Source of the DNA: Octopus bimaculoides
Taxonomy: Eukaryota
Reading direction: 5' to 3'
Assembly: GCF_001194135.2 (NCBI RefSeq)
Contig: NC_068993.1
Span: 1,567,642 to 1,610,201, forward strand
Length of the DNA stretch: 42,560 nucleotides
Part shown: positions 14,640 to 41,863 of the stretch, piece by piece
Position numbering within the stretch: the stretch's first letter is position 1
How the letters are laid out: the number at the start of each line of letters is the position of its first letter
Translations under genes and position numbers: made by a program
Notes under the pieces: generated by a model
The model's database searches: none
Told to the model about the DNA's origin: nothing
What the model saw: only the letters and a program-made list of their open reading frames with translations

Positions 14640-14810
14640 CTCACTAGTGCTGGTGCTACAAAAAGTACTCTATACACTTTGCATGATGAAAGGCATCAAG
14701 CCATAGAAACCCTGCCAAAGAAGACATTGGAACATGATGCAGTCCTCTGATCCATCAGATCCTATCAAACCATCCACTTATGCCTATATAAAAGATGGTG
14801 ATGATGAAAA
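14640..14810 (+). mobile_element. Highly decayed copy of the GAT-tailed retroposon end
   Basis: AGTGCTGGTGCTACAAAAAGTAC...AAGGCATCAAGCCATAGAAACCCTGCCAAA...GGTGATGATGA. Confidence 0.45.
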
Positions 14811-14917
14811 CATAAAAAATTTAATTAGTGGTTGATTGAAAAGTTTGTTCCCACACAGGAATGAGTATCTTGTACCCTAAGTTAAAATTCAATATTTAAA
14901 TTATCTGATTACATATA

Positions 14918-16189
14918 TCAGGCTGAGTAAAAAGTAAGCAACGTTTTGAAACATGAAATTCATTAAAATATATTTCAATGCTGCGGATATTTTATTCATC
15001 AAAATAAGTATCATTACAATCAACACATTTTTGCCAATGAGTTACAAGTTGGATTATTCAGGTAAGGTAAAAACCTGGAGTTCTGGTGCTGATGAAGTCT
15101 TTGAACACACTTTGATTTTTAAACTCCTTCTCTCGCAGGAAACCATCAAGATGCTTGAAAAAGTGGAAGTCGGTAGGAGAAAGGTCTGGGGAATTAACTG
15201 GGTGGGGAAGAACTTTGTAGCCAAGCTCCTTCAACTGCTGGAGCGTCATTAGTGAAACGTGTGGTGGAGCCTTGTCATGAAGAATGATTGGCCCTCTTTT
15301 GTTCACCAGTCTGGGATGGAGGAGTAGGAGTTTTTCATTCATTTTGACAACTTCATGGCAATATGTTTCTGTAGTAATAGGTTTTCCAGCTTTTAAGAAG
15401 TTATAGTGGATGAGTCCAGTCATACACCACCAAACAGTCACCGTAACCTTCTTTTTGAAGAGCTCAGGTTTAGAGGAGGTGTTCGACACTTTATTTTGGT
15501 CCAACCACTGCGAAGAATCTACTATTGTACAGAATCTACTTTTCATTGCAAGTTACAATACGGTCGAGAAATGGGTCAGTCTAGTTACAGAGAAGAAGTG
15601 ACAAGCAAATTTCATATCTGTGCATTTTCTAAATTTTCATTCAAATCGTGTGGTAACCATTTGTCAAGCCTTTTTTGATTTTCTGATCGCATGCAATGGT
15701 TGCAGGTATTTTCCTGGCTAACTTGAAGATCTTTTGCCAGTTCTTGAGTGGTTTTACGTGGATCTTTCTCAATGACAGTCCTTAATTGACCGTCATCGAT
15801 GACAGGTGGGCGTCCACTACACTCACGATCTTCAAGGCTCAGGTCTCCACTGCGAACTCATTTAAACCATTTTTGAGCTGACCACTCACTGGTCATTTCC
15901 TCCCCAAACGTTACGTTGATAATGTGAGCAGTTTCAGCTGCTTTACGTCCTTTCTTGAAGTTGAATAGCAAAATTGGTCGAATACTGTGCTTTGACAGTT
16001 CCATTTCAGATGATTGTAACAACAGCGAAAAAAGAATATCAATGTTAATTTATTGATGCATTCGGGCAAAACTGTGTCTGCATTATCAGACCATTGCAAA
16101 ATAATGTTTTAAAAAAATTCAAAATTCTGCAAAAATTTGGTACAAATTCTTCATGGTTCAAAACGTTGCTTACTTTTTTCACAACCTGA
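14918..16189 (-). mobile_element. Full-length (1272 bp) defective mariner DD34D transposon
   Basis: About 40 bp TIRs (TCAGGCTGAGTAAAAAGTAAGCAACGTTTTGAAACATGAA and TCAGGTTGTGAAAAAAGTAAGCAACGTTTTGAACCATGAA) each flanked by TA. Transposase from ATG 16004 contains WLPHDL, RIVTCNEK*, LHDKAPPH and SPDLSPTDFHFF, with 34 residues between the 2nd and 3rd D. Stops and frameshifts present. Confidence 0.95.
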
Positions 16190-23670: not shown

Positions 23671-23901
23671 TTATTTTGTGGCGCTGCCAACCAATGTTGT
23701 GCTTATCAGCGGCAGGGTATCAACAGTGACCTTAGTGTATTTTTGTGTAGCAAAACCAGTTGATTCCACAGTTTCCCAGGGTCGTCGAGTCAGGTGGCAG
23801 TTGCCAAACATGCACTTCCATGACCCATGCAGCAAAACTTGGAAAAACTTAATTGTAGAGCTGGTTGCCTCAACATGTTCCCAATATATGAAAATTCCAC
23901 C
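23671..23901 (-). CDS. METTL7A: METTL7A/B-like methyltransferase exon 2 (GGIFIYWEHV...GNCHLTR...VGSATK*); spliced protein 256 aa, intron 23902-27699
   Basis: ttgtttcttgcag| acceptor, phase 0; family C-terminal pattern GG-x-F-x-x-x-EHV ... C-x-LTR ... GF ... G-x-A-x-K-stop. Confidence 0.88.
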   Translation of the reverse strand, partial: GGIFIYWEHVEATSSTIKFFQVLLHGSWKCMFGNCHLTRRPWETVESTGFATQKYTKVTVDTLPLISTTLVGSATK

Positions 23902-25444
23902 CTGCAAGAAACAAAAAGAAATAAAATAATGATTTGCCACAAGGACAATGGATGAGAAAACATTACAAAGACAAGAACTGTGAAGGTTTGCACTGAAACT
24001 GAAAGTAAAATACAAAATATACACATTAAACAAAATTCTTTAGAATGTCTTTAGAATAGGAGGGAATGTCACTAAGGGGTCAATCAAATGACCCCACAGG
24101 CTCAGAATTACCTTGATAGCAGGTAGCCGCTTCCAGTTTCGATTTTCTGGTCAACAATGGTCCAATTCATTCAGGCTGTCCCCCCACCCGCAACTTTGCC
24201 CTCCATTTCACCAACTTTATTAGAAGCAGCACTTCTCTGTCTGCTCGATCCAGGTCTGCAGCTCCCACAAAGAACCAAACCTGCTCACCATCCAGGAACC
24301 TTCATAAATAGTGCAGCCTTTACATGACATCGTGTCCAGCAGGATATAACAGCCTAGTCTCCCTCGTATCATGATATATCCTAAAGAAGCAAGAGCATGT
24401 TGCATTATTATGAGATATTCTGTGGCTGGAAGAAATGATGGGATTATCCCAAAATGATTGCATGACCAATCTGGATTAACCCTTTAGCAATAAATTGTTT
24501 ATACTCCTACAACACAAAAAAATATCTTAACAATTGTTTTTTGTACAATTCCTAATATTTAATTATAAAAACACAATAGAATTTTTAATCACTGAATGGT
24601 CATAGGGGCCCACTAAAGTAGAATTGGAATAAAGGGGGTTCATGGGGAAAAAAGGGTCGAGGACCCTAATCACAAATATGTGACTTGTCTCAAATGACAC
24701 ATTTACAAACACTACCGTAACCCAACTCCTAATTGATGAATCATCATCTATTTACTCCCATCATCCACTAATCCTTTTGATGCAAGCCCATTCTGAGATT
24801 ACCCCTGATTCTAAGATATACATTTCTTGTTTTAAAGAGATCTGAATTAAAACCTTCCACCAAAATCTATGTTAATTTAAGTTCCAAATACAAATTTTAG
24901 AGTAGCAAGAATTACATTTTTCATAATAACATAACAGTTATTGTTCAAACTTTTATTTGATGACCAAGTTTGCCTCATAAAACTTGTCTGATGCTTCTTA
25001 CTTTAAAATCGTATTTTTTTAATAATGTTCACCTGACATTTAAAACATCTCTTTGGTTCACTGCATGACCTACATAAAGATTGTATGAAAAACACGCATC
25101 CACTGAAATTACAATAAACTACATGTACACTACTACAATGTATGTGGAGAAACACACACACACACACAGACTTCAACATAAGCAGAGATATACACACCAT
25201 CGCTGTATAAGCAGTATCAAAAGGTTTATGCTTCAAAGCATATTAGAATGATATCAGATATATCCAGTTCAGTATATTGAAGCACTGCTTTACTGTTAGG
25301 TGCCCTTTCTTCTATTAACCCTTTACCTGCTTTTCAAGTAAGGGGTTTTCTTTGAAGGTGCAAAATCAGTGGATGATTTGTTGACAAGAAAGGATAGCAA
25401 TATCACTGCTTGTGGCTTAGTGATTTTCGGACAAGTGTGAATGT

Positions 25445-25484
<40 letters not shown>

Positions 25485-25613
25485 GGTTACTTTTGATTTC
25501 TGTCTACCAAATGTTACTTACAAGGTTTTAACTAATCCAGGTTAATATTTGTTATGATCGATATAATTAATGATGAAGAAACACAAAGAAGGAAAGAAAA
25601 TGAGAGAAGAGAG

Positions 25614-25645
<32 letters not shown>

Positions 25646-25937
25646 ACAGGGAGGAGAGAGAGAGAGAGAGAGTAGAGGGGAAAGAGAAAGATAGACTAAA
25701 CTGCATACAAATATATTTGTTAAATTCTGGCGTTTCTTTTCATTATGGCCCACCATTTTGATAGAATGACAACTTTGTATATTTTAATTAGGCATGAACA
25801 CCTGTGTCCATGGAGACAGGTGGGCAGACTAAGACACTGTTTTGTGTTGAATGTGAAGGCTATTGAATTCTTCACTTGTCTCAGTCGTGGAATTCATAGC
25901 AACTTTAGATGCAAAAAACTTGGATATGGTTAGTGCA

Positions 25938-26180
25938 CATTATTTACATTTGATGGATATTTGTCCTCATCTTGTTTGTTGTTAACACAACGTTTCGGCT
26001 GATATACCCTCCAGCCTTCATCATGTGTCTTAGGGAAATTTTGAACCTGGGTTCTCATTCCTAAGTTTTTTTTCAATGTTATTATTATTATTATTATTAT
26101 TATTCACTGCCTGGAATTGAACTTGGAAACTTGGGGTTAGTAGTCTGCGCTCTTAATCACTATGCCATATGCCCGTGGGC

Positions 26181-26215
<35 letters not shown>

Positions 26216-26350
26216 CATAATAATAATAATAATAATAATAATAATATTGGAGGGTATTTCAGTTAACAAGAAACAAGATGAGGACAAATATCCGTCAAAT
26301 GTAAATAATGTAAATAATGTACATAATTCCTCATTTCTTAAATATAGAAC
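25938..26350 (-). mobile_element. Palindromic non-autonomous element: tRNA-like head plus hammerhead-motif tail on -, with an internally deleted mirror arm on +
   Basis: 25938-25986 and 26262-26310 are 47/49 reverse complements; central TATGCCC-gt-GGGCATA at 26168-26183; A/B-box-like TGGCATAGTGA and AGTTCAATTCC on -. Confidence 0.75.
25984..26029 (-). ncRNA. Minimal type I hammerhead ribozyme fold with a C3-to-A core substitution (probably inactive)
   Basis: On -: GACAC-ATGATGA-A-GGCTG gagggtatat CAGCC-GAA-ACGT-T-GTGTT. Stem I (5 bp with one G-U), stem II (5 bp) and a palindromic ACGT stem III are all readable. Confidence 0.65.
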
Positions 26351-27699
26351 GATGGTCAGTGCAGTTGTGAACTCACTGGACCAAGGTGTTTGCTGCTGTC
26401 CATATATGAGCAGTAAGACAAAGGTTTCGGTCCTCAGATTATTAGTTCTTCTGCCTGGGGCCCCTGTGTGCCACCTGAACCTTTTTTTGATACCAGGACG
26501 TTTTGCAGGATTACGGTTCACCATTAGTTGGATTACAAATCCAATCAATGACTCTTGTCAGAAACTGGGATTTGTCTTGATTCTTGTACGATTTGGGAGT
26601 CGCAGTTTAGGATGTTTGGTGATGATGCTTGATTTTCTGAGTTAGATTCTGTGTGTCATACTCTCTTCTCTGAGGATCCAACTAGGGGGATGGCTCATGG
26701 TGGTCGAGCACATGGATCATGGCTCATGGTGGATGAGGAATCATATTGCAGAAATGGGGACTGAATGGAGGGTTGCATGGAGGGATGACCTGAGCAAATA
26801 CCAACAAATGGTGGACCCCACAGCATGATGCAGCAGAACATGGCCCCTCCACACATGCCTGTCTTTTATTAAGAAACCTATCCAAATAAATCATAAAAGA
26901 ACTTACATAGGCAAATAATTCCTACAGAACATGTATTCCACTCTCTGATATTGATTCATAAAAGTTGAAAAGGAGTGGTTATATGATCGGCTAGAAATAG
27001 CAGCCAAATTAGTGGCTTATGGCGATCTTGGTGTATAATGTTTTCTTTCAGCTATGTTATTAAAAACATTGCTATAGCAATAAAACTTTGAAAGCAACGA
27101 AGAAAATATTGTTGTAAAACTAGAATTCATAGACAATACTCGATTACAGAAAGCTCATAGGTGTAATTAACAGTGAAATGAAGTATTTTGATATAATTGA
27201 ATCGCAAATCGAAAGTAGAAAACGAACGTTATTCAGAAAGATTGTTGAAATAATTGGCAAGCTTCGCAAAAAAAAAAAAAAAAAGATTAAAAAAATTTTT
27301 CTAAGGATATCAATAATTTTCGGAGAACATATTTTCCAATGTTTAGTGTATTTAAAAGTTAATTAGCTGTGTAGAAATATTAACAAATAATTAATAAAAG
27401 GTAACATTCCAAACGCTTTTGAGAATTCTTTTGTGACGCATCTGTTAAGTCGGAAGAATTCGGATATCGATCGTATAAAGGATTAGCAAGAAAATACACA
27501 TAAAGATATAAATTTCTAACAAAGGAACAAAACCACAGTCTTAAAAGTGTTTAAATTTGATATTTTTTTAAACATACTCACAACACCCTATGAATTGGCG
27601 CTTCACCGAATGTACAGGTACCCTGCTGGATTTGAACTCAGATACGGTAATGCATTTTCTTCGAAACACACGCATTTACACTTATATGGAATTACTTAC

Positions 27700-28239
27700 T
27701 TTCCGAAGGACTCTTTTTATTTCATTCAGAACCTTTTCCACATCTCCAACGGAACACAGACACATGGTAGATATAACGACATCGACGGTACCAGTTTTGA
27801 TAAAAGACATGTCTTCGGCAGGCGAACAGTAGAACTTTTTGAGCGTCAGGTGCAGATATTTCTTTATGTTTTTCTTCACTGCCACTTCATAAATATCTTC
27901 AAGGTCCAGAGCATATACATTGCAGCCTTCTGGATAATGAGGGAAGTTCGCACCATCTCCGATACCGATTTCCAAAACGTCGAGATTCTCAGAAATTTCT
28001 TTCTTTTTCATGCGAAGAGGCTGGAAGAAGTTATCCAGTTCTTCTTTATGCTTCTCCGCTACCTTGCGCCAGTACTCTGCCATTACGTAGGATAGTAACC
28101 TTTGTCTGCAGGTATTTAAGGCTTGTTTGATGAGATTCGAAAGCATATAGACTAAAAGAATGATTCCAAATAATATAAGGATGAACATGGCAAATGGATT
28201 TGAAGAAATCCCAGCGTCTGTAGAGTCTTCTGAAGACAT
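27700..28239 (-). CDS. METTL7A: METTL7A/B-like (TMT1 thiol-methyltransferase family) class I SAM-dependent methyltransferase, copy 1, exon 1 (180 codons)
   Basis: N-terminal hydrophobic segment, motif I VLEIGIGDGANF, then GTVDVVISTMCLCSV and EIKRVLRK followed by a gtaagt donor (phase 0). The intron position matches my recollection of human METTL7A (after RVLRP). A versus B orthology is not resolvable. Confidence 0.9.
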
Positions 28240-28485
28240 TTTGGGTGTGTTTTAAGAAGCAGAATAATCTTCAAAAGATATTTACAAAATTAGGGACAGC
28301 TTTTAACAGCGAACGAACGAACAACCGTTGGAAATGAAAGTTGAATCATGAAATGTAAATAAAGAAAACGCTGCTCTAAAAAAATTCTGATGATTTTGTT
28401 ATGTGAACGACTGATAAAGTTGTGTTTATGAATTAAGATTCTCAGGCATTCTTTCTCATGGTTCCTACCCTCTCGTGAATGGAGT

Positions 28486-28499
28486 GCAGCCAATGGTTG
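28486..28499 (-). promoter_or_regulatory. CCAAT-box island (GCAGCCAATGGTTG on +) upstream of METTL7-like copy 1
   Basis: Identical 14-mer upstream of both copies while the flanks have diverged; about 250 bp from the ATG. Confidence 0.5.
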
Positions 28500-28661
28500 T
28501 GCGTTGCCATTCAGAAGCGTTGCAGCAGATAAAAAAGGGGAAAGGCGAGACACAAATAAAATAATTTTCAAAACATTTCTCTTATATCAAGTATTTAGTT
28601 TTGGGCTGCAGGGCTAATTAGCCCTCTGCAGTTCGCACTGAGTGCAGCCTTTAAGCTAATT

Positions 28662-28718
<57 letters not shown>
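28662..28718. repeat. (CTAT)n microsatellite
   Basis: Read directly. Confidence 0.9.
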
Positions 28719-29240
28719 AGGTCCTCCAGCATAACCACAGCCGCTTGGCTGAAACACATAAAAGAATATATCTAATATAATAAATGCGAAAACTAATTAC
28801 TGTGTCAGCTTGTCACACTTTGACTCCCTCTCTCACTATTCAATGACACTTCATCGTGTTGGGGTAACAGTAAAAGGAGGCGCTGGGACAGGGAGGGCGG
28901 TGGCGAAGAGGGAGGGAGAGAGAGAGAGAGAAAGAAAGAAAATGAAAGGGTGAGAAAGAGAGACAAAGAAATGTAGGGAGAGTTGATGTTTCATTAAAAA
29001 TAGTAGTGTTGATGGTGGGAGTATTAATGAGAGAGAGAGAAAGAGAGAGAGAAAGTGGATATGTGAGAGAAAGAGGGAGATGATATACAACTTTTTAGGA
29101 CAGAAATTCCTGTGGTGAGCATATTGGAAACATTAAGAGAAAAGAAGGGGAGTGCCAAGAAAGTATTTTCTCTCTGAACAGTTGCAGTTATTTTTAGAAT
29201 ACTTTATTACAATGAAGAATTTGATACCAAATACTCCAAA

Positions 29241-30500
29241 CATGAAATCTTTCGAGCGGGATCGTTTGCCAGTGCCCCTGGACTGGCTCATGTGCGAGCG
29301 ACACCTGAAATCTTTCGAGCGGGATCGTTGCCAGTGCCCCTGGACTGGCTCATGTGCGAGTGACACATGACATCTTTCGAGTGGGATCGTGCCAGAGCCC
29401 CTGGACTGGCTCATGTGCGGGCGACACATGATATCTTTCGAGCGAGATCGTTGCCGGTGCCCCTGGACTGACTCTTGTGCGGGTGACACATGAAATGTTT
29501 GAGCGGGTTCGTTGCCAGTGCCCCTGGACTGGCTCTTGTGCGGGTGACACNNNNNNNNNNNNNNNNNNNNNNNNNNNNNNNNNNNNNNNNNNNNNNNNNN
29601 NNNNNNNNNNNNNNNNNNNNNNNNNNNNNNNNNNNNNNNNNNNNNNNNNNNNNNNNNNNNNNNNNNNNNNNNNNNNNNNNNNNNNNNNNNNNNNNNNNNN
29701 NNNNNNNNNNNNNNNNNNNNNNNNNNNNNNNNNNNNNNNNNNNNNNNNNNNNNNNNNNNNNNNNNNNNNNNNNNNNNNNNNNNNNNNNNNNNNNNNNNNN
29801 NNNNNNNNNNNNNNNNNNNNNNNNNNNNNNNNNNNNNNNNNNNNNNNNNNNNNNNNNNNNNNNNNNNNNNNNNNNNNNNNNNNNNNNNNNNNNNNNNNNN
29901 NNNNNNNNNNNNNNNNNNNNNNNNNNNNNNNNNNNNNNNNNNNNNNNNNNNNNNNNNNNNNNNNNNNNNNNNNNNNNNNNNNNNNNNNNNNNNNNNNNNN
30001 NNNNNNNNNNNNNNNNNNNNNNNNNNNNNNNNNNNNNNNNNNNNNNNNNNNNNNNNNNNNNNNNNNNNNNNNNNNNNNNNNNNNNNNNNNNNNNNNNNNN
30101 NNNNNNNNNNNNNNNNNNNNNNNNNNNNNNNNNNNNNNNNNNNNNNNNNNNNNNNNNNNNNNNNNNNNNNNNNNNNNNNNNNNNNNNNNNNNNNNNNNNN
30201 NNNNNNNNNNNNNNNNNNNNNNNNNNNNNNNNNNNNNNNNNNNNNNNNNNNNNNNNNNNNNNNNNNNNNNNNNNNNNNNNNNNNNNNNNNNNNNNNNNNN
30301 NNNNNNNNNNNNNNNNNNNNNNNNNNNNNNNNNNNNNNNNNNNNNNNNNNNNNNNNNNNNNNNTTGCCAGTGCCCCTGGACTGGCTCATGTGCGAGCGAC
30401 ACCTGAAATCTTTCGAGCGGGATCGTTGCCAGTGCCCCTGGACTGGCTCTTGTGCGGGTGGCACATAAAAGACACCGTTTCGAGCGTGGCCGTTTTCGTG
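29241..30500 (+). repeat. 61-62 bp tandem satellite (unit about GCCAGTGCCCCTGGACTGGCTCATGTGCGAGCGACACCTGAAATCTTTCGAGCGGGATCGTT) spanning an N gap
   Basis: Unit starts at 29268, 29330, 29391, 29453, 29514, then 30366 and 30428; gap 29551-30363 is flanked by units on both sides. Confidence 0.95.
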
Positions 30501-30698
30501 CGGGTGACACGTAAAAGCACCCACTACACTCTCTGAGTGGTTGGCGTTAGGAAGGGCATCCAGCTGTAGAAACTCTGCCAAATTAGATTGGAGCCTGGTG
30601 TTGCCATCCGGTTTCACCAGTCCTCAGTCAAATCGTCCAACTCATGCTAGCATGGAAAGCGGACGTTAAACGATGATGATGATGATGATGATGATGAT
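30500..30698 (+). mobile_element. Retroposon 3' end with (GAT)n tail (LINE 3' UTR or LINE-tailed SINE)
   Basis: GAGTGGTTGGCGTTAGGAAGGGCATCCAGC...CATGGAAAGCGGACGTTAAAC(GAT)n; near-identical copy at 41692. Confidence 0.85.
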
Positions 30699-31585
30699 TA
30701 GGATACCGTTCTTGTCTCTCAGTGGCAGCACCCAAACAATTTTTATGATTACCATCAAATTCTTTCATAAAACCAGAATGGTCAATAAGAGCTGGTGCTG
30801 AGCATTCATTTTGTGTTGTTATTATGGAACAAGCACAAGAATCTTGGGTCTAATTCCTGAAATTTGGTGTAGAATTCAAAGTACTGTTGACTGCATGACT
30901 AAACATGATGTATATTTAAACAGAAGCCCTCCATAGTTTAACATCACATACATGTGACTGTTGCACTTCCAACAACCCTGCCATCACCACCACCACATTG
31001 AGCAAAACCCATTGACAATTTGAATATTCTTTTGTGATAAAACAACAGCTGGTGTACTTCCATATTTGGCATTCACTCTCAATTTACTCAATAATTACAT
31101 TATTATTTTATCAATTCCAGCCACTGCTGATGTTATTTTTCCAATTCATTTTGTAAAGAATATTTCAAAATAATTATACAAAGAACCATTTCCTTCTACC
31201 TCGACCAATTTACAACAACTTTGCAGTTAACTACTTTATTATTTTCATTTTACTTTTTCATGCTTTTTTTTTAAATAGATTCCCCCACCACCACCAAAGG
31301 ACAAGAATGTGCATTATAGCATGGTTTGACCTTTCATAAATTTCATGTGAAAAGCCAAAAAGAAAAACAAACTAAATTGCATTTACTGCCATTCTGTGTT
31401 GTGCTGCACAGAAAGCTGTCTTTGAGAGATTCCAGTGGAATTTCAGTCGCTCCTCACCCCGCCCAACTCTTCTTCTCATCGTTGGGGAAGGGAATGTTGT
31501 GAGAGGCCATCTGTAAGCTTGATAGACAGGATTTCCATGTTCGTTAGTAAGATTTTATATTACATAATACACGCATACATGACAT

Positions 31586-31915
31586 GATGATGATAGCTTC
31601 CCCCTCGTTATCGAGTATGGCCATTGCACGAAGCTTAACTTAACGGTGCTGTGATCAAATGTGACTTTTTAGCCCAGCCAAAGATCTGCAATGTCTTGCA
31701 CAGAGTTGGCATCCAAAACCTTTACTGGCAGTAGCTGGCTGTTGTTGTAATTGGGCTCCATGTACCTTTGCGTGTCGTTTAAGTCCTCCTGCTGAATCAC
31801 ACTCCCTTCCACACGCCCGACAGACGTGATTAGTATGGTGTGTAGCATCATCACCAGCGGCCTGGTGGTCAATCATCGGTCTTGCTTTATGACTACGAAG
31901 ATGACTCACGAGTCC
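31586..31915 (-). mobile_element. 3' end of an RTE-clade LINE with two C2H2-type zinc fingers and an ATC tail
   Basis: CRACGRECDSAGGLKRHAKVH and CQLCARHCRSLAGLKSHI*, then a short UTR ending GGCCATACTCGATAACGAGGGGGAAGCTATCATCATCAT; the upstream side is cut by an (ATAC)n tract. Confidence 0.7.
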
Positions 31916-32846
31916 AGCATACATACATACATACATACAAACAAACAAACAAGGACAGACACACAGCAGATGTTTGAATGTTTCATGAAGAAATACAACA
32001 GAGAAGTCAGTCCTAATTAAACTACATGATTGTACTTGCATGGTTGTCTCATATTTTAAGACAGTACAGTATATTTTGAGGGAAATTTTGAAGGCAAGCA
32101 ACATTGCAGAGGCACATTCACTGACTGTAGTTAAACAACCTGTTTGTAGCAGACACTTCAACAGGTTTTTATCAGCTTTGCTTTGACTAACCACAGGACA
32201 GTGACCCGGCAGCCATTTTAGTCAAACAAAGCTTATTTTAAGCTGCATTATTCTCTTGGCTCTTCAAGTTGCAGTAACAACCAAGAAAAAAGAAGTAGCA
32301 CACACATAAAGGAGTGATTATTCACCGAGTTATGGTTGTTGTTTAAATAATAAGACATCTTTAACTGAATAAAATAACAAACTAACAAAGAAAAAAAAAT
32401 GCTAGTTTTAAAATCAATGCAGTAGTTGTGTTGACAAGTAATATTCATAGCCACTTCAACATGGTTGGCCATTCGATTGGACTCTAATGCAATTTTTTTA
32501 ACTCCAAGAGGACATCTCCTTTAGCTGGTTAATGATGCACAGTTGCAATTGATAAAATGTCATCTTGGGATTAAAAAATCACAGTAGAGTCCACTCGAAT
32601 GGACAGCCATATTGATGTGGCTACTAATATTACTTAAAGAACAAAATAATCAGGAGGAAAGCTTTTCACACGGCAAAGTGGAAAGCTGAATAAGAAACCT
32701 GATGGGCTTTTGTACCTGATCCAGATAAAAGTTATTCAACATTGCTCTTTGCTTTGTTAGAAACTCTCTTTTCCTTTTTGGTTTGTTATTCTAATTCTGT
32801 ATCACAATGCTTCAAGCAAACTGTAATACACTTGAAAATGATACAT

Positions 32847-33169
32847 GAACTTGACTGAGATCTCTTACACCATCCGTTATATTCTCCTGGCATTGCGCCA
32901 TCTGACTACCACTTATTTTTGTCTCTACATAATTCATTGCAAGGAAAAACATTTAAAGATTTCGATGGAGTCAAAATGCATCTAGATAACTTTATCCTTT
33001 AAAACCAGTGCAATTTTATGCTGATAGAATATCTAAATTGCCTGATAGATGAGTAAAGGTCATTACTAATAATGGAAATTATTTCAATGAATAAAATTTA
33101 TTGAAAGGTCAATTATTCATATCTCTTTTTGCATTTTAAAAAATGCTCAGAACTTTCCAGGCAACCTAA
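32847..33169 (+). mobile_element. 3' fragment of a second mariner family with its terminal inverted repeat
   Basis: Translates LLHHPLYSPGIAPSDYHLFLSLHNSL...SKLPDR*VKVITNNGNYF, then a TIR-like end AAAAAATGCTCAGAACTTTCCAGGCAACCTAA. Confidence 0.85.
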
Positions 33170-33234
33170 CAGAACTAGCCACTGACCTGTTTAAAAAATT
33201 TTTTTTGACCTCTCTATCTATTTGTCTATCTGTC

Positions 33235-33965
33235 TATAATGTTGCTATACCAATCGCTGGGTAGGACCCCCTCATGGACAACCTAATTAACTATACAGGT
33301 GACGACGCCACATCCTTCCCCACCGGATATTTGAAACATCACAGTGGTGATTCCTAACGAGCCGGGGGCTTTCCCTGTCTTCATGTCCTTAATTGCTTTA
33401 TCTACTAAGCTACAGTCGATTCAGATAGCTGGTCCCTCAATTGGGTCAACATTTGGCAGACACTCATCCCCACCTTCATTCTCCATGTTCAGCAGTCTTT
33501 CATAATGGCATCTCCAAGCCTCTTTCTTTGCAGAATCGTTAAACACAAGTGCACCATCATCCATGTGGACACATTTCTCTCCTATGACATCATGATTTCC
33601 TCTCACACAATGTCTTGCAATCCGAAACACTCTAGTCCTCACGTCACAGAATATAGGCAAACTTTCTCTTTTCTCCTTCTCCCTTGGCTAGATATATCTG
33701 TTTCCTTCTGGCTATTTGATACAATTCCCTGCTACCCCCACACTTCCAGCCCTTCCAGGCCTGTTTCTTTGCTCTAATGACCTTGTCTACCGCATCATTC
33801 CACCACCACGTCACCATAGGTCTGGAGGGAACTTTACACCAACCACAGATTTTGTCTGTGGCATTCAGCAAGCTGTCTCGCAGGAATTCCCAGTTGCCCT
33901 CTATGTTACAAGTCTGTAGTTCCTCCTCCCTCTCGTCAAATTTCTCAGTTAGGGTATCCCTAAAT
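33235..33965 (-). mobile_element. RTE-clade LINE ORF fragment (linker between endonuclease and RT)
   Basis: WEFLRDSLLNATDKICGWCK..TWWWNDAVDKVIRAKKQAWK, KKEAWRCHYERLLN and KAIKDMKTGKAPGS; disrupted by stops and frameshifts. Confidence 0.85.
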
Positions 33966-34019
33966 TCCAGACAATATAAAGGGCCATCATCTTGTAAGGT
34001 GAAGAATGATGTCTTAGAA

Positions 34020-34360
34020 CCATAACTATTCCTTTCCGACTGGGAACGAAGGACTTCAGCCAGTTATAAAGATCATCTTTCACAACATTGCCGAGAGTTT
34101 TACTACGAGTCATTTGTGTGACACAGAATTGAAGGCTTTAGCAAAGCCAAGATAGATAACATCTATCCATGAGCCACCATCAGTAATTTGGGTGATGTCC
34201 TCAAGAAACTTGATGAGTTGGCTACAGCAGCTGGAGTTAGGGACAAATCCAAATTGTGAGGGTCAAGAAAGAGCTGTGAGAACTCCAAAAGTTCCAGAGT
34301 GTTTCTCTAACACACGATTCCATCAGTTTGGCGATGCAGCTAGTAAGGCTGATATAAGGA
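34020..34360 (-). mobile_element. CR1/L2-type LINE reverse-transcriptase fragment
   Basis: ISLTSCIAKLMESCVRE, QFGFVPNSSCCSQL and IDVIYLGFAKAFNSVSHK*LVVKL are typical CR1-group RT motifs. Confidence 0.85.
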
Positions 34361-35144
34361 AAAATAAGACTAGGTCGAAAATGCTAAAATAATTTTATCA
34401 TGAAGAACATTTTAGTACCAATTTCAGTCTTTGCGACTTTTTCAACTTAGAGTAAAGCACAAAAAGCAATTAAATTTTGGAAAACTATTAAATGAAATGT
34501 TTTTTAAAAACATTTCCATAGTTTTCAAATGCAAGGGACATTTTCCTATTTTTCTGTCTGTTCTATGTCTCTTTATTACTTACGTGAGTTCTTCGTAGCA
34601 GGTACCTGGTAGTAGTAATCTAATATTTGATATGTGTGTCTATGTTTTGTAAGTGCATGTGTGTGTATGGGGGAGAGCCTGCATTATCTGTGTTCTCTGT
34701 TCATACATGTTCGTTTATTTTGTTTTTATTTATTTGTTCATGTGTTTATACCTACTTTTTTTTCTTTTTTCTTGAGGGATACGCATGCGCAAATGTAGAC
34801 ACACACAATAGGAATACAAAATACAAAATGGCTGATCGTTAGCAAGGAGGGACACACATATAAGAAAGAAGAAAGCACAGGACCACTCATGAGGTCACAG
34901 AAGTGTGACGAAAGAACTCTGACCGAAATACAATTAATGTAATGTAATGTGATATAAAGCTGAAGCAAATTAACACCAAATATACAGTGCTTGTGTTTTT
35001 ACTGGCTAAACTGGCAACATGACCAACCCCATAAATATATATATATTAATATAGTATATATATATATATTAATATAGTATATATATATATATATATATCG
35101 TCCGTAAAATCCGAAAGAAGCACACTTTAATATGTAGAGCAGTA

Positions 35145-35212
<68 letters not shown>

Positions 35213-36521
35213 ACATACATATCTATATACATTAGAGAGAGAGAGAGAGAGGGAAAAGTAAACGTAAAACTGTGATCGGAAGCGACGAACCATCCTTCGC
35301 TTCGCTTTTTCAAGGCTGCTGCACGTATCAGGTTGACGAAATACGTTGCGATGAATAATATGCGTTTGTGAGAATTTTAGACTCTTTTAATAACTGTCAA
35401 TAAATGGAACCAGCATAAAGGTGTTGCAGGCGTAACCATACAGTCAGCGTAATGTTTGATAAATATATAATTTATCTAAAAATATTAAGCACTGATTGAT
35501 AGTCATGTCTCGAATCCATTTTCGTGTGGCGTACAATAAACCAAAACCAAAACATCAAATTAACACTTTCCTATCAATATAATCAACCACTTCGATGTTA
35601 TATCAATCGACAAACACACATCGGCTTTTATTCAGAAACCTTTCCAAATAAATTGTGAAATAACTTACATAGGCAAATAATTCCTACAGAACATGTATTC
35701 CACTCTCTGATATTGATTCATAAAAGTTGAAAAGGAGTGGTTATATGATCGGCTAGAAATAGCAGCCAAATTAGTGGCTTATGGCGATCTTGGTGTATAA
35801 TGTTTTCTTTCAGTATCGCTACTAATAATATTGCTACAGCAATAAAATTTTTCTAAAGCTATAAATAATTTTCGGAAAACACATTTTCCAATATTTAGTG
35901 TATTTAAAAGTTAATTAGATGTGTAGAAATATTAACAAATAATTAATAAAAGGTAACATTCCAAACGCTTTTGAGAATTCTTTTGTGACGCACCTGTTAA
36001 GTCGGAAGAATTCGGATATCGATCGTATANNNNNNNNNNNNNNNNNNNNNNNNNNNNNNNNNNNNNNNNNNNNNNNNNNNNNNNNNNNNNNNNNNNNNNN
36101 NNNNNNNNNNNNNNNNNNNNNNNNNNNNNNNNNNNNNNNNNNNNNNNNNNNNNNNNNNNNNNNNNNNNNNNNNNNNNNNNNNNNNNNNNNNNNNNNNNNN
36201 NNNNNNNNNNNNNNNNNNNNNNNNNNNNNNNNNNNNNNNNNNNNNNNNNNNNNNNNNNNNNNNNNNNNNNNNNNNNNNNNNNNNNNNNNNNNNNNNNNNN
36301 NNNNNNNNNNNNNNNNNNNNNNNNNNNNNNNNNNNNNNNNNNNNNNNNNNNNNNNNNNNNNNNNNNNNNNNNNNNNNNNNNNNNNNNNNNNNNNNNNNNN
36401 NNNNNNNNNNNNNNNNNNNNNNNNNNNNNNNNNNNNNNNNNNNNNNNNNNNNNNNNNNNNNNNNNNNNNNNNNNNNNNNNNNNNNNNNNNNNNNNNNNNN
36501 NNNNNNNNNNNNNNNNNNNNN

Positions 36522-36736
36522 AAGAAGTTGTCCAGTTCTTCTTTATGCTTCTCCGTTATCTTGCGCCAGTACCCTGCCATTAATACGGTTTGTGTTTTCA
36601 GTCTGAAAGTATTTAAGGCTTGTTTGATGGGATTCGAAAGCATATAGACTAAAAGAATGATTCCAAATAATATAAGGATGAACATGGCAAATGGATTTGA
36701 AGAAATCCCAGCGTCTGTAGAGTCTTCTGAAGACAT
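36522..36736 (-). CDS. METTL7-like copy 2, visible first 71 codons of exon 1 (the rest lies in gap 36030-36521)
   Basis: Same ATG context and N-terminus as copy 1 with 12 amino-acid differences in 71 residues; the intronic sequence beyond the gap (35625-36029) is homologous to copy-1 intron 26865-27477. Confidence 0.8.
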
Positions 36737-37034
36737 TTTGGGTGTGTTTTAAGAAGCAGAATAATCTTCAAAAGATATTTACAAAATTAGGGACAGCTTT
36801 TAACAGCGAACGAACGAACAACCGTTGAAAATTTTGAAAATGCAAGTTGAATAATGAAATGTAAACAAACAGTGAAATGTATGTTGCGTATGGCAGTATT
36901 GAAACGCGTCGTCTGCTCTATAAATTCTTCTTTTTTCCTTATGTGAACGACCGACGAAGGTTTGTTTACGAAAGAAATGCAGTCACTGTATTGACGACAC
37001 TAGTTGTTCTTTCTTATCGTCACTGCCTTCACAT

Positions 37035-37055
37035 GATTGGCGCAGCCAATGGTTG
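37035..37055 (-). promoter_or_regulatory. Paired CCAAT boxes (GATTGG + GCAGCCAATGGTTG) upstream of METTL7-like copy 2
   Basis: Same 14-mer as at 28486 plus an oppositely oriented ATTGG at 37036-37040; about 300 bp from the ATG. Confidence 0.5.
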
Positions 37056-41691: not shown

Positions 41692-41863
41692 ACTCTCTGA
41701 GTGGTTGGCGTTAGGAAGGGCATCCAGCTGTAGAAACTCTGCCAAATTAGACTGGGAGCCTGGTGTTGCCATCCGGTTTCACCAGTCCTCAGTCAAATCG
41801 TCCAACCCATGCTAGCATGGAAAGCGGACGTTAAACGATGATGATGATGATGATGATGATGAT
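41692..41863 (+). mobile_element. 5'-truncated young copy of the same (GAT)n-tailed retroposon end
   Basis: Differs from 30528-30698 by two substitutions and a 1-nt indel on visual alignment. Confidence 0.85.

Follow-up and report, generated by a model that had tools for sequence, protein, structure and literature searches.

Candidate tandem alternative first exons upstream of a single last exon in an octopus METTL7/TMT1-like gene

The vertebrate UGT1A locus carries up to 13 first-exon cassettes, each with its own promoter, start codon, and 5' donor, that are joined to one constant region, and its constant exons carry the cofactor site. In the clustered protocadherin alpha and gamma loci, dozens of exons are subject to stochastic promoter choice via CTCF/enhancer looping, with a function in cell identity. 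A layout of the UGT1A kind can be recognized in a 42,560-bp stretch of Octopus bimaculoides DNA (the window; 36.5% G+C, five runs of N), where a METTL7/TMT1-like gene has two tandem first exons, both on the minus strand and both upstream of exon 2, the last exon. The annotated first exon is termed copy 1 (beta type) and the more distal one copy 2 (alpha type); a first exon with its flanks is referred to as a cassette. The reading somewhat favored here is that this is one gene with two ancient tandem alternative first exons, alpha and beta, and one last exon, in which copy 2 is a live alternative to copy 1. Window positions 13671-38239 match the reverse complement of O. bimaculoides chromosome CM046613.1 (GCA_001194135.2) 1,581,312-1,605,880 identically, gaps included, and the features discussed below are collected in Table 1. 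The human relatives TMT1A and TMT1B are separate complete genes, and the family is localized to membranes or lipid droplets (PMC10339810).

Copy 1 exon 1 and exon 2 together encode a protein of 256 amino acids that matches XP_014768656.1 ('thiol S-methyltransferase METTL7B [Octopus bimaculoides]') at 100% identity. A class I S-adenosylmethionine (SAM)-dependent methyltransferase domain is present by Pfam, with Methyltransf_11 matching residues 89-185 (E 1.3e-15) and further matches to Methyltransf_25, _23, _31, and _12. A hydrophobic N-terminal anchor, read from the translation at residues ~15-34 (PFAMFILILFGIILLVYMLS), precedes this catalytic domain. The first 180 residues hold the anchor, a juxtamembrane patch, and motifs I, post-I, and II (VLEIGIGDG, ALD, and VDVVIST), and the last 76, from exon 2, hold motif III (GGIFIYWEH), a conserved GNCHLTRRPWET segment, and the C-terminus; the motif names are what we take to be the correspondence from general knowledge of class I methyltransferases, together with the Pfam match. 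A protein search returned octopus relatives, one distant methyltransferase, and nothing else, and a PDB sequence search returned weak matches to distant solved methyltransferases and no TMT1 structure. NCBI and UniRef names place the protein in a METTL7/TMT1-like family, with thiol-methyltransferase activity as its putative function.

The original prediction stated that promoter, exon 1, and ~0.8 kb of intron occur twice in the same orientation. For the exon and the intron this is borne out by three same-orientation blastn blocks (28025-28363 versus 36522-36869, 90.8%, E 1e-139; 27289-27477 versus 35841-36029, 95.2%; and 26863-27089 versus 35625-35851, 93.9%), a homology far above chance. The copy-1 intron shares its first ~840 nt (27699-26863) with copy 2, minus a stretch of ~200 bases (27090-27288) that is present in copy 1 only. 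The paralogy then runs out within the intron at 26863 in copy 1 and 35625 in copy 2, as had been claimed (26865 and 35625). For the promoter the claim holds no farther than ~130 bp upstream of the ATG, where strong identity gives way to patchy alignment. Beyond about -130 the copies share little except an ATTGG/CCAAT motif, of which copy 1 retains the ATTGG half only. Copy 1 and copy 2 both begin with an ATG of their own, preceded by a conserved block that contains CCAAT/ATTGG and makes a putative promoter for each. Around the ATG and along the readable exon the differences are unevenly spread, with 1 mismatch from -95 to +106, 15 in the 48 nt from +107 to +154, and 4 in the 61 nt from +155 to +215; the central, divergent patch defines the alpha and beta types.

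Exon 2 is present once. Neither tblastn with the full protein (E<=10) nor blastn at word size 7 with the O. sinensis exon-2 region finds a second copy in the window, in agreement with the earlier claim of one convincing exon 2 at 23901-23671, and no second exon 2 was found in the sister loci L001, L004, or L005 described below. The window and the gap-free sister loci thus each carry a single exon 2, and no cassette is accompanied by a copy of its own.

The original prediction allowed for an exon 2 lost in a gap, an alternative disfavored by what the two gaps downstream of the copy-2 ATG appear to contain and by the sister loci. Both flanks of the gap at 36030-36521 come from one cassette in the correct order and orientation, and the equivalent copy-1 stretch measures 547 nt against 492 N. 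Because the flanks are collinear and the lengths are close, this gap should hold copy-2 codons 72-180 (325 nt), the donor, and ~220 nt of intron, so that the comparison of flanks and length upholds the earlier placement of the copy-2 donor inside it. The gap at 29551-30363 (813 N) is bordered on both sides by one 61-bp satellite (29240-29550 and 30364-30494). Since it lies in satellite DNA, it is very unlikely to hide an exon; moreover, 30696-29244 is an insertion relative to O. sinensis, the flanks of which map to the adjacent bases 22683 and 22682 of L005.

The comparison with other octopus assemblies proposed along with the original prediction covers an O. vulgaris locus (L001), an O. sinensis locus (L004 and L005, from CM016871.1), and a 2.4-kb octopod Logan genomic contig (L003). 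L001 and L004/L005 are gap-free. In both sister species the cassettes have one orientation with a single exon 2 at the far end, as located by tblastn. O. sinensis has four cassettes (Z, A, B, and C) and O. vulgaris at least three (A, B, and C), arranged as distal alpha cassettes, proximal beta cassettes, and one exon 2, the same order as in the window. Cassette A is intact in both species, with 180 codons followed by a GTAAGT donor in the nucleotide alignment (GTAAGTA in both, and GTAAGTG in L003). Cassette B is a fragment (73 amino acids by tblastn) in which homology is lost after about codon 66, and cassette C is a fragment (139 amino acids by tblastn) in which homology is lost after codon 139, followed by a stop. 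The fourth O. sinensis cassette, Z (L004 10001-10513, XP_029643875.1, 170 amino acids), is found 20.9 kb upstream of A and is oriented like it. Its reading frame is shifted by -1 at codon 159, and no exon 2 occurs within 10 kb of it; although annotated as protein-coding, Z looks like a dead exon-1-only cassette.

Because A alone is intact, a complete methyltransferase can be made in the sister species only from A and exon 2, across B and C. The annotated gene models do splice distal A over B and C onto the single exon 2, both in O. vulgaris (CAI9731828.1, 256 amino acids, 81% identical, from a gene that spans 38.3 kb of L001) and in O. sinensis (XP_029644128.1, 256 amino acids, from a gene that spans 31 kb of L005). 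A second O. vulgaris isoform, CAI9731829.1, starts at M76 and crosses the A-exon 2 junction. Alternative forms entered the O. vulgaris annotation only via PASA updates from Iso-Seq and RNA-seq assemblies (PMC10700109). CAI9731829.1 is therefore probably PASA-derived, which would lend the A-exon 2 junction indirect transcript support. The shared-exon design originally proposed, in which a distal cassette is spliced over a proximal one, is thus matched by the sister loci and their gene models; its likeness to UGT1A stands for the layout only.

Two further features of the sister loci deserve mention. XP_036364186.1 (RefSeq, 141 amino acids; L005 17757-33425) takes residues 1-57 from cassette B and 58-141 from cassette C; the junction bridges ~15 kb and falls at homologous positions of the two paralogous pseudo-exons. 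This model ends at the truncation of C (…CSFL*) and is probably a gene-model artifact and not a real protein. In addition, the sequence starting 270 bp past the exon-2 stop recurs as a ~490-bp copy of 91% identity (L004 20002-20495 versus L005 41323-41808, also L001 92-328), which sits ~10 kb downstream of Z and ~10 kb upstream of A. Its homology begins where the O. bimaculoides/O. sinensis alignment stops, and it could be the footprint of an old whole-gene tandem duplication minus exon 2 or a dispersed repeat.

The cassettes can be paired across species by both patch type and flanking sequence. The alpha-type patch (…RLKTQTV.MAGYW…; codons ~43-55) occurs in copy 2, in cassettes Z and A of O. 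sinensis, in A of O. vulgaris, and in L003, and the beta-type patch (…[QR/LK]xLS[YF]V…) in copy 1 and cassettes B and C. Window 38158-36522 matches sequence upstream of A, and the copy-2 intron at 35781-35201 matches the intron after A at 88%, past the end of the copy 1/copy 2 homology. On the other side, the counterparts of window 29126-28373 lie upstream of O. sinensis B and C, and those of the copy-1 intron at 26169-24484 lie downstream of these two cassettes; the exon-2 region 24494-23399 matches L005 40200-41324 at 88%. Because flanking synteny and patch type agree, copy 2 is assigned as the ortholog of A and copy 1 as the ortholog of B/C. The double CCAAT box is kept in copy 2 (identical), in A of O. 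sinensis and O. vulgaris, and in L003, whereas Z, B, and C, the dead cassettes, no longer have it. An 86-bp segment of the intron (35878-35963 and 27326-27411) has a separate distribution, being 93-94% identical to L005 18363-18447 near cassette B (compared with ~88% for the surrounding intron), 81% identical near Z, and absent from the intron after A; it may be an intronic element under conservation or a patch that is slow by chance.

The layout, with its order and orientation, is conserved in two other Octopus species, copy 2 is orthologous to A, and beta has been lost there. O. bimaculoides and O. vulgaris separated ~34 million years (My) ago (PMC10700109), and by these alignments the arrangement of two cassettes and one exon 2 predates that split and is at least ~34 My old. 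As O. sinensis and O. vulgaris have an intact alpha, O. bimaculoides has an intact beta, and each species has one exon 2, two usable first exons are indicated for the ancestor. On the simplest history, both were in use in the common ancestor together with one last exon.

Over the first ~130 nt, species-specific substitutions are common to all cassettes of a species, which points to gene conversion in this part of the exon while the patch stayed distinct. The 48-nt patch with its 15 differences forms an island of old divergence between homogenized stretches (1 difference in 200), suggesting that the two types were kept distinct. Copy 2 and A differ at 13 of 215 nt; when polarized with L003, 2 of the 13 changes fall on the copy-2 branch and 11 on the A lineage. 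The A-lineage changes in the first 215 nt (L005 10001-10215) are mostly nonsynonymous, so the N-terminal part of the only live cassette is unusually fast, and three adjacent changes in A (nt 186-189) are common to Z, which suggests a conversion event. Exon 2 is also variable. Between O. bimaculoides and O. sinensis 18 of its 76 residues are changed (23671-23901 versus L005 40822-41052), and its ratio of nonsynonymous to synonymous substitution rates (dN/dS) is 0.80, compared with 0.44 for exon 1. GGIFIYWEH and GNCHLTRRPWET are conserved, and the acceptor context has 1 difference in the 40 bases shown versus O. sinensis and O. vulgaris. The fast evolution of exon 2 may reflect co-evolution with the first exon in use or weak constraint.

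If both cassettes are live in O. bimaculoides, transcription would start at the alpha promoter of copy 2 or at the beta promoter of copy 1, and this choice would decide which first exon is used. Splicing would then join the phase-0 donor that follows codon 180 to the acceptor at 23902, the only one that matches. After initiation at copy 2, copy 1 would be removed inside an intron of ~12.3 kb, because copy 1 gives no evidence of an upstream acceptor, and codon 180 would be joined to GGTGGAATT of exon 2. The copy-2 product would be 256 amino acids long, differing from the annotated protein in its first 180 residues and sharing the last 76.

A copy 2 that O. bimaculoides can still use, with the gap hiding the rest of an intact 540-nt exon and its GT donor, would fit the absence of any lesion in the readable third, the exact double CCAAT box, the length of the gap, and the 2 of 13 changes on its own branch. 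These are weak tests of a live exon, and several observations weigh against it. Sixty percent of the copy-2 exon (325 of 540 bases) and its donor lie unread inside the assembly gap, the deposited annotation GCA_001194135.2 has no gene call on copy 2, and the protein collection holds no O. bimaculoides protein of the copy-2 type. Exact-protein look-ups and the protein collection yielded genomic records and one 2.4-kb Logan genomic contig, with no cDNA-like contig and no copy-2 protein. The gap would impede a copy-2 gene model in any case, as spliced reads could not have been placed with the donor inside it. The copy-2 branch has changed at 2 of 215 sites compared with 9 of 287 in matched intron, which is ~3-fold slower but not significant (Fisher p=0.13), and the first 106 nt of copy 2 are homogenized with the functional copy 1. 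The dN/dS of copy 2 versus A, ~1.2 (Nei-Gojobori, 71 codons), offers no hint of constraint. It does not discriminate, however, because the whole gene evolves fast, the shared exon 2 included. Finally, the A-exon 2 junction of the sister species is known here from gene models, and a single cassette type survives in O. sinensis and O. vulgaris, so that joint long-term use is not the rule and the sister locus is not a working multi-isoform cluster; survival of just one version is a frequent outcome.

The main rival is reciprocal decay, in which the ancestor had both first exons but O. bimaculoides uses beta only and makes one enzyme, and copy 2 is a silent or non-coding relic, possibly broken in the gap. 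This history has a substantial probability, though it is not the favored one. The one annotated isoform, the lack of a gene call on copy 2, the dN/dS value, and the nonsignificant intron control speak for it, and cassette death is frequent, three of the four sister-lineage cassettes being dead, so that a loss of alpha would mirror the loss of beta there. However, the dead cassettes Z, B, and C show plain lesions and loss of the CCAAT box, and copy 2 shows neither in its readable part. It has also gained just two lineage-specific substitutions in 215 nt over ~34 My, and the size of its gap fits an undeleted exon. A live copy 2 is somewhat preferred over a relic. A stronger version of that preferred reading is less likely than not and is offered tentatively: the locus might be a UGT1A-like module kept for at least ~34 My that yields two enzymes of different localization or substrate range in O. 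bimaculoides. Its two first exons, with separate promoters and a single catalytic C-terminal exon between them, would differ chiefly in the juxtamembrane patch, which would be shielded from the conversion that evens out its flanks. In that case the enzymes may be xenobiotic or H2S thiol methyltransferases, and lineages of the O. vulgaris type would, again tentatively, have fixed one version later.

Two further explanations carry little weight. Were copy 2 a separate complete gene, with an exon 2 of its own that is diverged or in a gap, the locus would be an ordinary tandem pair; two assembly gaps do lie downstream of copy 2, and the ~490-bp repeat of exon-2-downstream sequence ~10 kb from Z might mark an old whole-gene duplication. 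Such a pair is very improbable, as the tblastn and blastn searches recovered no second exon 2 in the window, one gap is satellite in an insertion that O. sinensis lacks, the other is taken up by the expected exon 1 and intron, and in the gap-free sister loci exon 2 is missing both after Z and between A and B/C. A hidden second exon 2 is thereby largely refuted. An assembly artifact, in which copy 2 is no true upstream neighbor of copy 1 but a contig scaffolded wrongly, a haplotig, or a paralog collapsed from elsewhere, is slightly less credible still. The assembly is built from short reads, the gap splits the copy-2 cassette over two contigs, and the two copies are almost the same over ~200 nt around the ATG; yet the alpha-beta-exon 2 order and the unique flanks recur in two independent gap-free assemblies, and the alpha-type patch and upstream sequence of copy 2 are not allelic variants of copy 1. 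On the matching order and the alpha-type sequence, an artifact is rejected.

Table 1. Coordinates of the cassettes, exon 2, and neighboring features in the window
Feature	Position	Strand	Details
Copy 2 5' untranslated region and proximal promoter	37054-36737	-	double CCAAT box AACCATTGGCTGCGCCAATCA at 37054-37034
Copy 2 (alpha-type) exon 1, readable part	36736-36522	-	ATG 36736; 215 nt, 71 codons, no stop or frameshift
Alpha-type patch of copy 2	36630-36583	-	FRLKTQTVLMAGYW
Assembly gap	36030-36521	.	492 N; also in GCA_001194135.2
Copy-2 intron, readable part	36029-35201	-	36029-35625 paralogous to copy-1 intron; 35781-35201 orthologous to intron after O. sinensis A
Inter-cassette spacer	28501-35200	.	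satellite-flanked gap, multi-copy repeats, mariner relic, open reading frame (ORF) fragments; no exon-2 relic
Retroelement-like ORF fragments	33421-33871	-	in inter-cassette spacer
Mariner C-terminal relic	~32830-33020	+	related to the 162-aa transposase ORF 15058-15546; pairwise E 2e-9
C2H2 zinc-finger ORF, 179 aa	31655-32194	-	ends in two C2H2-like motifs, HVCRACGRECDSAGGLKRHAKVH and FGCQLCARHCRSLAGLKSHI; sub-threshold Pfam matches
Copy 1 5' untranslated region and proximal promoter	28500-28240	-	one ATTGG (inverted CCAAT) at 28496-28490
Copy 1 (beta-type) exon 1	28239-27700	-	ATG 28239; 540 nt, 180 codons; phase-0 donor AAA/GTAAGT
Beta-type divergent patch of copy 1	28133-28086	-	nt +107 to +154, codons 36-52; CRQRLLSYVMAEYW
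Copy-1 (beta) transcript intron	27699-23902	-	between copy-1 exon 1 and exon 2
Exon 2, sole copy	23901-23671	-	231 nt including TAA; 76 codons and stop; acceptor tttctttttgtttcttgcag/GG
Mariner-type transposase fragment, 162-aa ORF	15058-15546	-	Pfam Transposase_1, E 1.3e-17

The 7 kb between the cassettes had been described as transposon debris. This is partly so, given the mariner relic, the multi-copy repeats, and a weak RVT_1 match in the spacer ORFs (E 0.017, below the Pfam threshold), but several of the spacer blocks are single-copy sequence orthologous to O. sinensis. Pfam searches of the inter-cassette ORFs gave sub-threshold RVT_1 and C2H2 zinc-finger matches and no more. The region of the zinc-finger ORF (32498-31918) corresponds to two orthologous stretches of O. 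sinensis (L005 20094-20663 and 34314-34881, 88%), and the ORF at 31655-32194 is probably a retroelement ORF tail. The 61-bp satellite is read in about 5 copies at 29240-29550, with 89% matches. The satellite and an adjoining multi-copy repeat (30424-30698) make up an insertion specific to O. bimaculoides relative to O. sinensis; copies of the repeat that have satellite-like tails are found in O. sinensis too (L004 ~14744-15176). A dispersed repeat of ~170-200 bp (41692-41863 and 30496-30694) is present in at least 8 copies, in both orientations and at 76-88%, in 51 kb of the O. sinensis locus, and is probably a short interspersed element or an element like a miniature inverted-repeat transposable element. 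An ARAGORN scan of the window gave no tRNA-like gene.

The literature searched yielded no report of shared-exon cassettes in the METTL7/TMT1 family, no paper with both METTL7 and octopus, no work on the octopus gene, and, for invertebrates, nothing on variable first exons. Should copy 1 and copy 2 both be live, this would be an invertebrate case of the UGT1A-type diversification of detoxification enzymes that vertebrates use, in the TMT1/METTL7 family. Even with one live exon per species, it offers a datable case in which different descendants kept different first exons with the same last exon. There are consequences for annotation as well: three RefSeq/ENA 'proteins' of the sister loci are relics or chimeras (the 170-aa and 141-aa models and exon-1-only forms), and the O. 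bimaculoides model may miss an isoform because of the gap.

The octopus protein resembles TMT1A and TMT1B (METTL7A and METTL7B) in its length of ~250 amino acids, its N-terminal hydrophobic anchor, and its SAM-dependent class I domain, with the family given by the NCBI name; unlike in the human genes, its two first-exon cassettes have a single last exon between them. What the locus has in common with UGT1A is a row of first exons in one orientation with one constant region downstream, where each first exon has an ATG, a putative promoter, and a 5' donor (in copy 2 a predicted one). In both, the larger N-terminal part of an enzyme that is membrane-bound and conjugates small molecules comes from the first exon, and pseudo-exons vary among species. 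The octopus locus differs in having two cassettes (four in O. sinensis, three of them dead) and a constant part that is a single exon of 76 codons, and its SAM-binding motifs lie in the variable exon, whereas the cofactor site of UGT1A lies in the constant exons. Joint use of the cassettes within one species is, for the octopus, a proposal drawn from sequence comparison. As in the protocadherin alpha and gamma clusters, a variable first exon is spliced to constant sequence past the downstream ones (here in the sister-species gene models), and conversion seems to homogenize parts of the variable exons while others stay distinct; unlike in those clusters, there is no indication in the octopus locus of dozens of exons, stochastic CTCF choice, or a role in cell identity. 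The most accurate label is a tandem-duplicated alternative first exon, a common kind of event to which the locus is nearer than to a large variable-exon cluster. It matches tandem duplicated alternative exons in that promoter, exon 1, and proximal intron were duplicated to give mutually exclusive first coding exons, and it departs from the generic case in that its two versions predate a split of ~34 My and different versions survive in different lineages.

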